Positions 1,708 to 39,450 of a stretch of DNA of 64,000 bases are shown in pieces. Origin of the DNA: Salpingoeca rosetta (taxonomy: Eukaryota; Protista; Choanoflagellata); assembly GCA_033442325.1 (NCBI GenBank), contig JAWQFM010000008.1, positions 989,194 to 1,053,193 of the forward strand, in the 5' to 3' direction. Under the pieces are notes generated by a model. That model was not told the origin of the DNA, did no database searches, and saw only the letters and a program-made list of their open reading frames with translations. The position numbers and the translations under genes were made by a program. The first letter of the stretch is position 1; the number at the start of each line of letters is the position of its first letter.

Positions 1708-4436
<2,729 letters not shown>

Positions 4437-34489: not shown

Positions 34490-35071
34490 TGGGTGTGTGG
34501 GTGTGGGTGACTGTGTGTGTGTGTGTCTGTGTGACGCACTATGTCTGTATGTCTAAGAGTGCGCATACGTCTCGCATGCTTCATGTCACTGCATCATCAT
34601 GTTATTGTGCGTTGTGTTCTCACCACAGTCGTCCTTCTTTCCTCTCCCTGCCTTTAAGATGCTGTTGCTGATGTGTTTGCACACGTCATGTCGCTCAAGT
34701 ATGACGAGAAGCCAGACTACTCTCGCCTCACAGCTGTCCTTCAAGCAGGTGGGCAGTTCGTGATGCACGCGCGTTTAGTTTTGTGTACAGCCAACACCCT
34801 TGATTATGAACAGTTGTGATGATGACCCTGTGAACTGACACCTGTGAATTGACACACACACACACATGCACATGTATTCACACATGTACACACACATGTA
34901 TTTTTCACGTGTACACACATTCACACGCGCGCGCACGTGTTCACGCAACACAAATGCCTGTACTCAGGGCTCAAAGCTGCCAAGTCCAAGCTTGAGGCTC
35001 CGCTCCAGTTCAGCGCAGATGTCGTGAGTTGTTTTTCTGCTCAACCCATGCTATTACAACCCCAGCCCTCC

Positions 35072-35158
<87 letters not shown>

Positions 35159-36006
35159 TACTGCTCACCAGTGTCCTTGCGTCTTGTGAGCAGGAGAACG
35201 TGAAGCCGCCCCGTACTGCTGCTGCATCGTCAGCGAAAAAGGCCAAGCGAACACCAAGCGCAACAGCCAAGACAACAGCACGGCGTACAGGCGGAAGGAC
35301 AACGGCAGCAGCAAAACCAGCACCAGCACCAGCACCAGCAACAGTGGTGCTGGATGACGAGGAAGATGAGGAGGACGTGGTGCCAGTCAAGGCAGCTGCC
35401 AAGAGGAAGCCGAGGGCAGCAAAGTCAAGGTCAAGGGTGTCTCGCAGCAAGCCCAGGGCAGCGACAGTCGTGATGGACGACGACGATGAGGACGACGACG
35501 ATGATGATGGTGATGCTGGTGACGAGGACTATGTGCCTGAAGTTCCCCGCGTGCGAACCAAGCGGAGCACGAAAGCCGTGGTGTCAAAGACAAAGACAGT
35601 CACAACACCAACATCGCCGCGCCGGTACCTTGCGCCCGTCAACACCACGGTGACGCCCCCGCACGCCAAGCCCGTGCGCAAGCGCAGCAGCAAGTCCAGC
35701 AAGTCCAGCCAGTCCAGCCAGTCCAGCCAGTCAATTGCACCCAAGCAGCAGGAGGACCTGGTCTTCATGTACGATGACGATGCGATGGACGTCTATGATG
35801 ATGACGATGGTGGCGAGGGCTGCTGCGTGGTCATTGACGAGGACGTGGACAGCGTTGCCGTGGCAGGTGGTTTTGCTCCGCGCCGCAGTGGCCGCATTGC
35901 CGCTCGCCCGTCTGCCCGCACTCGTCGCACAAACGGGGGCAAGAGGAAGCAGTCGTACCACGAGGCCTTGTTCGAACGCCACAAGAGCGTCATGTCGTCA
36001 CATTGA
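30980..36006 (+). CDS. VRK-like (CK1 superfamily) Ser/Thr kinase with long basic/acidic low-complexity tail
   Basis: [17 protein letters not shown]|[44 protein letters not shown] and LKYDEKPDY. HDGTxEFT and SRRGDLE are VRK signatures. Confidence 0.88.
33231..33360. repeat. (TTTG)n microsatellite in a VRK intron
   Basis: Read directly from the sequence. Confidence 0.95.
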
Positions 36007-36482
36007 CCCGTTTATATGTGTTTGCTTGTGGGTTGTTGTCTGCTGCCGCTATGTCTGGCGGTTCTTGTGCTGTGGTGTTTCGTTGTTTGGCACAGCTTCA
36101 CGTTCAGAGAGCAAGTGATGTGACTGGCTGACATTGTTTCATTAAACGGTGTGATGTGACAGACATTTTTGGCACGCTGTGTTGTTGACAGCCGCTTAAA
36201 GTTGGTTGGATTCGTATCAATGGCGAGGGGAAGACCGTTGTCTGTTGTTTTAATGGCAGCAAAATGGAGATTGTTCAAGGTGGGAGCAAAGCTCGCAAGG
36301 AGAAAGAAGATGCAAAGTCGAACAGGAACACGCTGCTCGGACGGGCCTACGACATAACTTGCGATGTGCCTGTGAGTGTGCAAGGAGACAAGGGGGAAGA
36401 AAGGCACAGGGTTATCATCTATGAGCGAGAACCGGGGCTGAGACGAGATGGCTGCGAGCATGTGTGTGTGTGTGTGTTGTTA

Positions 36483-36638
36483 TTGGATCAGCGATCACTG
36501 GCAAGTAAGTCACATCAGAGCGTGACGAACTTAATTGGCTGCACATGCGCCTCCCAGAAAGAGAGGGCCAGCAGCCAATGTAAAGGAAAGGTCGTCATAG
36601 TCGATACGACGGGGAAAAAAGTTATGCATCATGTCCAA
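36483..36638 (-). ncRNA. Box C/D snoRNA, snR190/SNORD12-like, copy A
   Basis: Minus strand: terminal stem UUGGA/UCCAA, C box AUGAUGC, guide CUUUUUUCCCCGU, degenerate D' CGUA, C' AUGACGA, internal hairpin AUUGGCUGC/GCAGCCAAU, then ACUUACUUGCCAGUG and D box CUGA. Confidence 0.8.
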
Positions 36639-36888
36639 CGGAAGCGAATGATTTGTGGAGGCCAACAAAGTGGCGGACGTTCGCTATGGTTCAACTGACC
36701 GATCGAAACGCGGGCTTGGCAGAGCTCATGCGGGCAAGTCCGTGTGCGGCGCGCGGCGTACACTCTGCTTCTGAGCAGGAGCCCTGTGACCATCGAGAAG
36801 CCAATCGTACCAGCAGTGAGCGGGCGGCCAGATGACGCATGTTGTGGTGCTTGAGACAAGGAACAAGAAAGGGTATTGGGGTCTGTAG

Positions 36889-37044
36889 TTGGATCAGCGA
36901 TCACTGGCAAGTAAGTCACATCAGAGCGTGACGAACTTAATTGGCTGCACTTGCGCCCCTCAGAAAGAGAGGGCCAGCAGCCAATATAAAGGAAAGGTCG
37001 TCATAGTCGATACGACGGGGAAAAAAGTTATGCATCATATCCAA
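36889..37044 (-). ncRNA. Box C/D snoRNA, snR190/SNORD12-like, copy B
   Basis: Near-identical 156-nt copy with boxes and guides unchanged. Terminal stem GUUGGA/UCCAAC. Confidence 0.8.
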
Positions 37045-37320
37045 CCAAAACACAAGTGGGAGAAGAGAGAAGCAGGGTGTCTTTTGTGCAGCGTTTGCAC
37101 GTACGTTGTTACTTCACGAGGTGTCCGGGGAAGAGAGGCTTTGATTGGCGCGAGTGATAGGTCATCACGGTAGCTTGTCGACCTGTTCACACAATCGACA
37201 CAAGTGGGTGGCACGAAGTGAGCTTATGATCAGCGTGGGGTAAGACATGAGAGGATGTGCAAGCGAGGCGCGCTTGCGTATGTGTGGGCAAGCAAAAAAG
37301 TGCGGCGGTACTGAAGGTGG

Positions 37321-37476
37321 TTGGATCAGCGATCACTGGCAAGTAAGTCACATCAGAGCGTGACGAACTTAATTGGCTGCACATGCGCCCCTCAGAAAGA
37401 GAGGGCCAGCAGCCAATGTAAAGGAAAGGTCGTCATAGTCGATACGACGGGGAAAAAAGTTATGCATCATATCCAA
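37321..37476 (-). ncRNA. Box C/D snoRNA, snR190/SNORD12-like, copy C
   Basis: Third 156-nt copy. The terminal stem extends to UGGUUGGA/UCCAACCA (37318-37479). Confidence 0.8.
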
Positions 37477-38021
37477 CCAAAAAAAAGGAGGAGGAGAAGC
37501 CACATGGCATGGTAGCAAGCGCAGGTGAGTACACACCTTGGTCTCATGCATCGTGGCATTCACGTGGGTGAAGAGAGGAGATGTTGAAGGGAGCGAGCGT
37601 CGGGCGCACCTTGAGCCAAGGAAAGGTCATCACGCCATCTTGCAGTGAAGAGAACGTCGTCGTTGCACGTGGCGGGGAACTTGGCTGGCTGGCTGGCTGG
37701 CTGGCCGCTTGGTTGTCGAGGAGGTTGGATGAATGAACGTTGGCAGCCACGTGCACGGAACAAGAGAAGAACAGAAAGTGGGGGCGAAAATGCAAGAACC
37801 CGCCAGCGTGGCGGGCACGGATATTGTTCATGGTGTGCATGAATTTTCTGCAAGGAAAAGAAATCAAGTTGTCTTGTTTTTGAGATTGGGCTGTTGCACA
37901 ATTTTGTGCTGTTGTAAACTGTTGTGTTTCGAAACCGTTGCGGCAGGGCAAGTCAACGTCCTCAACGTCGCCGCTCTCACGTCGCATCTCACATCAAGCA
38001 GCAGCAGCAGCAGCAGGCATC

Positions 38022-38243
38022 ATGGAGGAGCTGCCGACCTATGAGCTGGAGGCACAGTTCTTCGGGTTCCTGCCAACAACAGTGATTGATCTCGGTGAGC
38101 TTGCAGGAAAAAAAAAAAAAGATCGCTCTTGGGTTGAGCGTGGGTTTGTGATGTTTGCTTCCGGTTCGGTGTGTTTTGTGTCTTGTGTCTTGTGTGCATG
38201 CGCCTGCGTTGTTTGCCCTTCAGCGGTGACTGACATCCACACA

Positions 38244-38294
<51 letters not shown>

Positions 38295-39450
38295 CACACA
38301 CACACACACATGCACACACACACACACACGCACATACATACACACGCACATACATACACATACACACAGTGATCAACGCTGTGAACGACTATGTGTTGCT
38401 TTCTGCGGATTCATTGAAGACGTTCTTGCTGGAGAGCAGCAGCAGCCCTTTCCGAGAAGAACCAGATCACGTGTGGAAGGTATGGCAAAGGGAGAGTAAT
38501 GTGCGTTGCTGCTTGCGTGGTTTGTGTGTGCATGTTGTGTGCATATTGTGTGTACGTGGTGTACGTGTGTTTGTTCGTGTGTATACGTCTGTTTGTAGCT
38601 GCTCTCTGTGCTCACATGTGTATATATGTGCTTGTATCAGGCTGTCACTGCTGTTGTGAACTTTGTGCAGGATGCAGTGGACAAATACTTTGACAAGTTT
38701 GAGGTGAGCATCTTGTATGTGCGTGTGCGCGCGTGTGTTGTGCGTGTGTGTGTTTGTGTGCGCGCGTGTGCGCGTGTGTGTGTTTGTGTGTGCGCGTGTG
38801 CGCGTGTGTGCGTGTGTGTGTGCGTGTGAGAGAGTGAGAGAAGAGCTGTGGATCTGCGTATGGCTGCGCACATATGCGTGTACATTCGTGGATGCAAACA
38901 GTGTGAGAGGTTTTGCTGCCAACTCATGCTCTTCTCGTCCTTCTCGTCCTTCTCGTCCTTCTCGTCCTTCTCGTCCTTCTCCTTTTGTTTCAGCTGTACT
39001 GCTTCCGCAACGTGTTCAAGATTCCAGAGGCGCTGCCTGTGCCCGGAGATATCCCTGCAGGCCAGCGCGCACCACAGCCCTCAGGAGAAAACAGCCTTCA
39101 AACCATCATCACAGACATTAACACGGTGTGTTGTGCTGGCACAGCTGTGCGCGCGTGTGTTTGTGTGTTTGTGTGTTTGTGCGTGTGTGCGTGCGTGCGT
39201 GTGTGTATATCTGCATGACCCTTACCTTGATGTGGTGCTGCTGTTCTTTGGTTAGGAGCTTGACAGGCACGCCAAATTGCGAGCAGAGCTTCGACGACTG
39301 AAGCGCGAAGCCAAGGTGCGTGCATATGTGGGTTTGCATGTGTTGGGCTTGTATGTGGTGGGCTTGTATGCGGTGAGTTTGCCATGCACTGAATGTCGTG
39401 TAGTAAGGGTAATAGGTGCGTGTTCATTCTTACTGGCTAGATTTTTCAAC

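Follow-up and report, generated by a model that had tools for sequence, protein, structure and literature searches.

The locus described here lies within a 64,000-nt stretch of the genome of the choanoflagellate Salpingoeca rosetta (assembly GCA_033442325.1, contig JAWQFM010000008.1, positions 989,194 to 1,053,193 of the forward strand), which we call the window and in whose coordinates positions are given. On the minus strand, between 36233 and 37675, lies a transcription unit of four exons and three introns. We are confident that it is a spliced, polyadenylated, apparently non-coding host gene, each of whose three introns carries one box C/D small nucleolar RNA (snoRNA) of the SNORD12/snR190/snR107 type. 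Such an arrangement has precedents in fission yeast, chicken, and mammals; what is new is its annotation in a unicellular relative of animals. RNA evidence over positions 35200-38220 was drawn from three studies, represented by two raw stranded RNA sequencing (RNA-seq) runs dated 2026 and, for two older runs, by Logan contigs, and whole-genome comparisons were made on the 55.4-Mb assembly.

The gene is delimited by strand-specific coverage, spliced contigs (runs X4 and X5), and a list of open reading frames (ORFs). A preliminary description of this region, made from sequence alone, had predicted a hidden minus-strand host with junctions at 37537/37182, 37105/36783, and 36700/36369, and all three are borne out by stranded reads as well as by fully spliced contigs of independent studies. 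From 5' to 3', exon 1 (37537-37675) is followed by intron 1 (37183-37536, 354 nt), exon 2 (37105-37182, 78 nt), intron 2 (36784-37104, 321 nt), exon 3 (36700-36783, 84 nt), intron 3 (36370-36699, 330 nt), which also contains a short (CA)n run at 36461-36480, and exon 4 (36233-36369); all four exons are joined in single contigs of runs X4 and X5. In the reads the introns appear as CT..AC joints on the plus strand, equivalent to GT..AG on the minus strand, and with first mates on the plus strand the two raw-read runs support intron 1 with 89+57 reads (joint 37180>37535, cut +2), intron 2 with 43+10 (joint 36782>37104, cut +1), and intron 3 with 23+9 (joint 36368>36699, cut +1). A minor alternative donor in exon 1, after 37610, accounts for 6 reads (joint 37180>37608, 4+2). 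First mates fall on the plus strand over the host and on the minus strand over the plus-strand neighbor at 35029-36159; because this orientation and the GT-AG polarity agree, we assign the host to the minus strand.

The ends of the transcript are visible in the same data. A T-run precedes 36233 in 7 reads and marks a poly(A) tail, so that the spliced minus-strand transcript anticipated earlier is seen with its tail, and an ATTAAA hexamer (36254-36249) lies 16-21 nt before the cleavage site. At the 5' end both spliced contigs terminate at 37675, and read depth halves in the bin 37624-37724 and falls to about 1 past 37725. The spliced RNA is thus ~438 nt long and its precursor (37675-36233) ~1.44 kb. 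In the spliced RNA, the first two ATGs start ORFs of 2 and 28 codons, respectively, and the third starts the longest ORF, of 52 codons, in keeping with the earlier estimate of about 50 codons for a transcript with internal exons of 78 and 84 nt. The short ORFs, of 28, 52, and 49 codons, have their stops upstream of exon-exon junctions, a nonsense-mediated-decay configuration, and the host RNA apparently has the profile of a non-coding snoRNA host.

Two short motifs in the exons deserve mention in their own right. At 37633-37619 on the minus strand, exon 1 reads UGAUGACCUUUCCUU, which matches the snoRNA C' box and the nucleotides that follow it at 14 of 15 positions; shuffled sequences do as well in 0 of 500 trials under strict scoring and in 19 of 1000 under soft scoring. 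In a wider comparison of host exons with the snoRNA, this one 15-nt block of exon 1 stands out and nothing more. Exons 1 and 2 (in the latter at 37177-37156, minus strand) also have in common a 22-nt motif that contains GUGAUGACCU and is 82% identical between them, a level reached by 1 of 300 shuffles. These motifs may be relics of decayed snoRNA copies that became exonic, or they may be a binding motif.

A repeat search of the region returned a single three-copy direct-repeat family (36479-36653, 36885-37059, and 37317-37491; spacing 406 and 432 nt), and alignment of the copies with their flanks shows that conservation starts and stops abruptly at the unit borders. The conserved block is exactly 160 nt long, slightly more than the 156 nt first reported, and includes the terminal stem. 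On the minus strand it runs from 37478 to 37319 in intron 1 (copy A), from 37046 to 36887 in intron 2 (copy B), and from 36640 to 36481 in intron 3 (copy C), as delimited by alignment and Rfam and, for copies A and C, also by folding. Copies B and C differ from copy A at 3 and 6 positions, respectively, and the full set of pairwise differences is 3, 6, and 8 per 160 positions (95-98% identity). The three near-identical units with unrelated spacers that had been described are therefore real: the flanking intron sequence is 57-64% identical after gapped alignment, which is the background level. Each unit starts 58-59 nt after the GT donor, and a CAG acceptor follows 103-136 nt past its end; the donor distance of 60-61 nt given before follows from the unit boundaries used there.

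Alignment of the three copies also bears out the view that substitutions spare the boxes and guides. With unit positions numbered from 37478 on the minus strand, the substitutions are confined to the outermost stem positions, to position 8 just before the C box, and, within the internal stem-loop, to positions 61, 87, 89, and 96. All three copies agree in the boxes, the antisense element, the kink-loop (k-loop), and the whole 3' third. A genome-wide BLAST search with one unit found three local copies only. Taken with the sharp borders and the confined differences, this indicates a genuine local repeat under constraint rather than a dispersed element.

Each unit has the parts of a box C/D snoRNA, and the minus-strand terminal stem, C and D boxes, and internal hairpin recognized earlier are all present. 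Positions 1-7 (GGUUGGA) pair with positions 154-160 (UCCAACC) in a terminal stem of 7-8 bp in copies A and B and 6 bp in copy C. The C box AUGAUGC, at 9-15 (37470-37464 in copy A), agrees with RUGAUGA at 6 of 7 positions, and the D box CUGA is at 150-153 (37329-37326). The antisense element ASE1, CUUUUUUCCCCGU, occupies 20-32 (37459-37447) directly upstream of CGUA at 33-36 (37446-37443), which takes the place of the family's D' box and is followed by the k-loop UCGACUA and then by UGACGA at 44-49 (37435-37430). We take this last motif as the C' box because the C' box of fission yeast snR107 is published as UGACGA, with a k-loop motif between D' and C' (PMC11971394); the preliminary description had placed C' in a UGAUGUG near the D box, which is probably wrong. 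Folding gives a minimum free energy of -53 kcal/mol, which none of 200 shuffles matched (z = -4.5 and -4.3), and the predicted structure includes the terminal stem, a k-loop hairpin, and the internal stem-loop, which is 46 nt long at positions ~62-107 (~37417-37372 in copy A) and is followed by a second predicted hairpin at 108-139. In copy C, each of the two apical-stem substitutions, A87G and G89A, faces a U; they turn U-A into U-G and U-G into U-A, so that pairing is kept.

In regard to family, SNORD12 (RF00581) is the best Rfam match to all three units when scored by E-value (38.6, 35.4, and 35.0 bits; E 4.5e-6 to 4.5e-5), and when RF00581 is run against the whole genome the units rank 1-3 (E 3e-4 to 7e-4), followed by a candidate with E 0.9. 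The covariance-model hit that had been anticipated thus materialized in the choice of family and in the genome-wide ranking, and fell short in score, which lies below the Rfam gathering cut-off. We attribute this shortfall to the 90-nt model, which cannot bridge the ~70-nt internal insertion and misplaces the 3' stem; the 5' half of the units aligns almost perfectly with the RF00581 consensus aUGAUGAcuuaACUUUUUUCCCCaUCAGAUCGACaaUG. Furthermore, the 14-nt sequence AUCGACUAUGACGA, comprising the end of D', the k-loop, and C', is identical to the consensus of the fungal snR107 family (RF04328); the boxes published for S. pombe snR107 are C' UGACGA and a degenerate D' CCUA, with a conserved 6-nt k-loop motif between them (PMC11971394). 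Since snR107, snR190, and SNORD12/B/C are stated to be orthologues (PMC11971394), the sequence evidence gives good support to the view that the units are orthologues of human SNORD12/12B/12C, Schizosaccharomyces pombe snR107, and Saccharomyces cerevisiae snR190, with the proviso that the formal Rfam gathering score is not reached.

The rRNA target was sought in the organism's own large subunit (LSU) rRNA, taken from one rDNA unit of the same genome (G000:C30) in which LSU, 5.8S, and small subunit (SSU) rRNA were delimited with Rfam. This LSU is 3702 nt long (L010:4403-8104, minus strand) and at 3020-3041 reads ...AAUCAGCGGGGAAAGAAGACCC... ASE1 pairs with positions 3026-3038 over 13 bp, including two G-U pairs, and the paired strand GCGGGGAAAGAAG belongs to helix H73 at the root of domain V. 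The preliminary description had proposed a 13-nt pairing with two G-U pairs at the SNORD12/snR190 site, and this pairing holds against the organism's own LSU, where it is the unique best site: with Watson-Crick pairs counted as 1 and G-U pairs as 0.5, it is the sole LSU site that reaches 12. When the ASE1 segment is shuffled and compared with the 55-nt H73 region, 1 of 2000 shuffles reaches its score. G3030, the third G of CGGGG, faces C28, the fifth nucleotide upstream of D', in a Watson-Crick pair, and because C3027 and G3030 mirror yeast C2392 and G2395 (PMC8536666), we consider G3030 homologous to yeast G2395, S. pombe Gm2483, and human Gm3878. Immediately 3' of the ASE1 pairing site, at ~3039-3050, the LSU sequence is GACCCGCUAGAGCUUGAC. 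The sequence GACCCUGUUGAGCUUGAC, considered typical of eukaryotic LSU at this place, has no match in the genome even with 2 mismatches.

A second antisense element (ASE2 or box B) was looked for where LSU domain I pairs with the organism's own 5.8S rRNA, a stretch placed by complementarity at LSU 395-401, 423-429, and 452-480. With the snoRNA numbered from 37480, the candidates are nt 53-63 with LSU 422-432 (11 bp, 2 G-U) and nt 140-147 with LSU 390-397 (8 bp); they are weak, being equaled by 109 of 2000 shuffles (p about 0.055). In addition, nt 109-118 match LSU 3008-3017 over 10 bp (3 G-U), just 5' of the ASE1 site, at a level we estimate to be that of chance.

Like snR107, which lies in an intron of S. 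pombe mamRNA (PMC11971394, RF04328), these RNAs are intronic box C/D snoRNAs in an apparently non-coding host, with an ASE1 that, upstream of a degenerate D' box, can pair with the same H73 sequence, an identical k-loop and C' box, and a stem-loop after C'. They depart from snR107 in being present as three copies in three introns instead of one, in their length (~160 versus ~118 nt), in the D' sequence (CGUA versus CCUA), and in having U in ASE1 where the fungal consensus has C, which gives the two G-U pairs; an ASE2 to LSU domain I, moreover, is not evident, and no U14 follows downstream. With vertebrate SNORD12, the best-scoring family, they have in common an identical ASE1 core ACUUUUUUCCCC, a spliced and apparently non-coding host whose introns hold one copy each, and the homologous 28S G (Gm3878) as predicted target. 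The vertebrate RNAs, however, are ~90-104 nt long without a long internal stem-loop, and the RF00581 consensus has D' CAGA, a model whose gathering cut-off the present RNAs do not reach. S. cerevisiae snR190 (PMC8536666, PMC11879421), at 190 nt of similar length, resembles them in having a box A complementary to H73 around G2395, degenerate C' and D' boxes, and, between C' and D, a long internal stem-loop. Unlike the RNAs described here, snR190 does not lie in an intron but is cut by Rnt1 from a dicistronic snR190-U14 precursor; its box B, 15 nt long, is complementary to 25S domain I, for which we find weak candidates only, and snR190 is proven to be non-methylating.

The host likewise resembles the snoRNA hosts UHG, GAS5, and the SNHG family, which are spliced and polyadenylated, have little coding capacity and unconserved exons, and place a single snoRNA in each intron. 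It differs from them in that no 5' terminal oligopyrimidine (5'TOP) start is evident, CACGTG E-boxes being found at its 5' end instead, and in the distance of 103-136 nt from snoRNA to acceptor. Mammalian intronic snoRNAs typically lie ~70-80 nt from the acceptor.

Copy number and host vary within the family. S. pombe has one snR107 copy in mamRNA, with U14 downstream (PMC11971394), human ZFAS1 carries three SNORD12-family copies in consecutive introns (PMC11971394), and the chicken expressed sequence tag BU281079 carries four, in introns 1-4 (PMC2653536). An Rfam scan of the 64-kb window at gathering thresholds found no U14. The S. rosetta triplet points to lineage-specific duplication or to homogenization by gene conversion. 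A scan of public metagenomes with the pattern CCCGTCNNATCGACTATGA yielded 60 loci with 2 true relatives (L039 and L048), too few for covariation; the remaining 58 are chance-like matches without a C box and an ASE1-like run upstream. The relatives, from a lake metagenome (L048:1466-1670, minus strand, and L039:1020-1075, plus strand), have a perfect Watson-Crick ASE1, CUUCUUUCCCCG, a D' box CCUA, and the same k-loop and C'. The L048 relative is ~200 nt long with an extra ~70-nt GC-rich hairpin between box C and ASE1, and it lies ~130 nt upstream of a CAG acceptor that is followed by an enolase-like exon, GYKDQVRIAMDVAASEF.

What these snoRNPs (small nucleolar ribonucleoproteins) do is the point on which alternatives have to be weighed most carefully. 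We favor 2'-O-methylation of G3030, by analogy with snR107, which guides Gm2483 with a D' box CCUA and the same C' box, and we find it plausible that the RNA also serves, independently of methylation, as a chaperone in the early folding of pre-60S particles, because its long stem-loop after C' is similar to the extension through which snR190 docks the Npa1 complex (PMC11879421). Both kinds of activity have precedents: in S. pombe, snR107 guides methylation and its ASE2 has a methylation-independent role in 60S biogenesis (PMC11971394), and in S. cerevisiae, snR190, with degenerate C' and D' boxes, leaves G2395 unmethylated and acts through box A and box B as a placeholder or chaperone that is removed by Dbp7 (PMC8536666). 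Alternatively, the same gene could produce a pre-60S chaperone or placeholder only, as in S. cerevisiae, with no methylation of G3030. The D' box CGUA has no GA dinucleotide, the long internal stem-loop follows C' just as it does in the RNA bound by the Npa1 complex, and yeast G2395 is unmodified even though the complementarity is the same, all of which would fit such a role; yet snR107 guides Gm2483 with an equally degenerate D' box and the same UGACGA, and the target G here is Watson-Crick paired at the fifth nucleotide upstream of D' within a 13-bp helix. We therefore hold a chaperone-only function to be possible, if on the unlikely side, and retain guidance of G3030 as the preferred activity.

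Several results weigh against our interpretation, either of the gene as a whole or of its activity, and should be read beside it. At gathering thresholds, Rfam gives no match in the 64-kb window: the SNORD12 scores stay under the cut-off of 43 bits, and fungal snR107 reaches 24-26 bits (best 26.2) against a cut-off of 44. The C box ends in C instead of A, the D' box lacks the GA of CUGA, no convincing ASE2 or box B was found against the part of LSU domain I paired with 5.8S, and snR190, with degenerate boxes and the same complementarity, is non-methylating (PMC8536666). When duplex energy is computed against the whole 8-kb rDNA, the ASE1 site comes first yet is not better than shuffles (z about 1), and none of the post-D', D-proximal, and post-C' segments beats shuffled controls there; we therefore base the choice of target on homology, on the ungapped helix being unique, and on its position. 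Finally, read depth gives no sign of a stable mature snoRNA, with 8-19 over the snoRNA bodies and 8-32 over the rest of the introns in a library without stated poly(A) selection. Because depth is even across the introns, we read these libraries as showing the precursor and not a stable RNA of ~155 nt.

The host itself might be more than a carrier, either partly coding, through a micropeptide from one of the 28-, 52-, and 49-codon ORFs, which would tell against a purely non-coding gene, or functional as an exon RNA, as proposed for mamRNA and ZFAS1. Its exon depth is at least as high as, or similar to, that of the adjoining coding gene, and the abundance of the spliced RNA, the 14/15 match to the snoRNA C' region in exon 1, and the GUGAUGACCU motif in exons 1 and 2 would be in line with this; but with a 2-codon ORF at the first ATG, the longest ORF only at the third, and a nonsense-mediated-decay configuration, we think a functional host improbable and return to a non-coding snoRNA host. 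Nor do we expect the host and its three copies to be orthologous to vertebrate ZFAS1 by descent from the common ancestor of choanoflagellates and animals. The same family does occupy consecutive introns of non-coding hosts in human (PMC11971394) and chicken (introns 1-4 of BU281079; PMC2653536), as well as an intron of mamRNA, a long non-coding RNA, in S. pombe (PMC11971394), but copies that are 95-98% identical within unalignable introns must be young or homogenized, copy number differs by lineage (1, 3, and 4), and hosts evidently change, because the L048 relative adjoins an enolase-like coding exon; such orthology is accordingly quite unlikely. The parallel drawn in the preliminary description with the three paralogues of ZFAS1 is for these reasons best seen as coincidental, given that the S. 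rosetta copies are near-identical, that their introns cannot be aligned, and that chicken has four copies (PMC2653536) and S. pombe one (PMC11971394). As for a miniature inverted-repeat transposable element (MITE), or a non-functional tandem duplication that mimics a snoRNA, the 7-8-nt terminal inverted repeats of the units could suggest one, but the genome has three copies, which share one orientation and occupy the three introns of this locus, one in each, and no other SNORD12-model match has E below 0.9. The many dispersed copies and target-site duplications by which the preliminary description would have recognized a MITE are contradicted by the data, the duplications being absent at the unit borders; conservation ends exactly at the snoRNA stem, and the units contain family-specific motifs and an rRNA target. 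We regard a dispersed repeat as ruled out and mimicry of this sort as hardly credible, and proceed with three snoRNAs in a non-coding host.

In such a host, RNA polymerase II would transcribe the ~1.44-kb minus-strand precursor, whose splicing and polyadenylation are visible in the reads. By analogy with other intronic snoRNAs, the snoRNAs would be released when exonucleases trim the excised and debranched introns back as far as the snoRNP on the C/D kink-turn and terminal stem, and the 438-nt exon RNA would most likely be a by-product. The snoRNP would engage LSU 3026-3038 through the complementarity of ASE1, which would place G3030 in the geometry for 2'-O-methylation by fibrillarin. The three copies probably arose by local duplication, their likeness being kept by selection, gene conversion, or both.

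The surroundings of the gene add a number of separate observations. CACGTG E-boxes occur at 37561-37566, 37666-37671, and 37748-37753 (span 37561-37753), three within 190 bp around the host 5' end, in the ~250 bp that separate it from the divergent gene; of the 48 CACGTG sites counted across the 64-kb window, no other three fall within 200 bp of one another. They are possible promoter elements, and CACGTG (Myc/Max) sites mark the promoters of ribosome-biogenesis genes in holozoans, including a choanoflagellate (PMC2570694). The divergent plus-strand neighbor (37923-38094, then from 38370 onward) starts ~250 bp from the host 5' end, and its first intron (38095-38369) is largely a (CA)n microsatellite; its N-terminus, MEELPTYELEAQFFGF..., searched as short pieces with its first two exons, has no Pfam or PDB match. 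The convergent plus-strand neighbor at 35029-36159 has a 325-aa ORF rich in lysine, aspartate, and glutamate with no Pfam match, and the contigs over it end at 36159, 74 nt from the host poly(A) site at 36233. Elsewhere in the genome, a universal SSU rRNA 23-mer occurs 13 times (G000 contigs C3, C4, C7, C9, C19, C22, C23, C24, C25, C30, C32, C35, and C36), in 9 cases less than 25 kb from the start of a different contig, a pattern suggesting that rDNA units are not gathered in one array but lie at many chromosome ends.

Our findings describe an expected kind of gene with no new mechanism, which will not surprise a specialist and is useful as annotation and for the comparison of guide and chaperone functions. 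A full-text search found, in the literature it covered, no study on Salpingoeca rosetta snoRNAs, and annotation by Rfam thresholds misses the snoRNAs of this host. It is conceivable, though to our mind doubtful, that the family has been tied to a dedicated spliced non-coding host since the opisthokont ancestor, that the form with a long stem-loop, which in yeast docks the Npa1/URB1 complex, is ancestral, and that the choanoflagellate RNA combines guide and chaperone activity, with animals having shortened the RNA later. Family function does differ by lineage, from methylation guide in S. pombe (PMC11971394) and human to chaperone only in S. cerevisiae (PMC8536666), and two of its hosts, mamRNA and ZFAS1, are credited with functions of their own; the gene described here adds a holozoan, non-animal data point to this picture. 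The long choanoflagellate form, set against the short animal and long fungal forms, could help to date the gain or loss of the stem-loop and of the second antisense element. Salpingoeca rosetta serves as a model for the origin of animals, and the locus gives it an apparently non-coding gene that is open to experiment.

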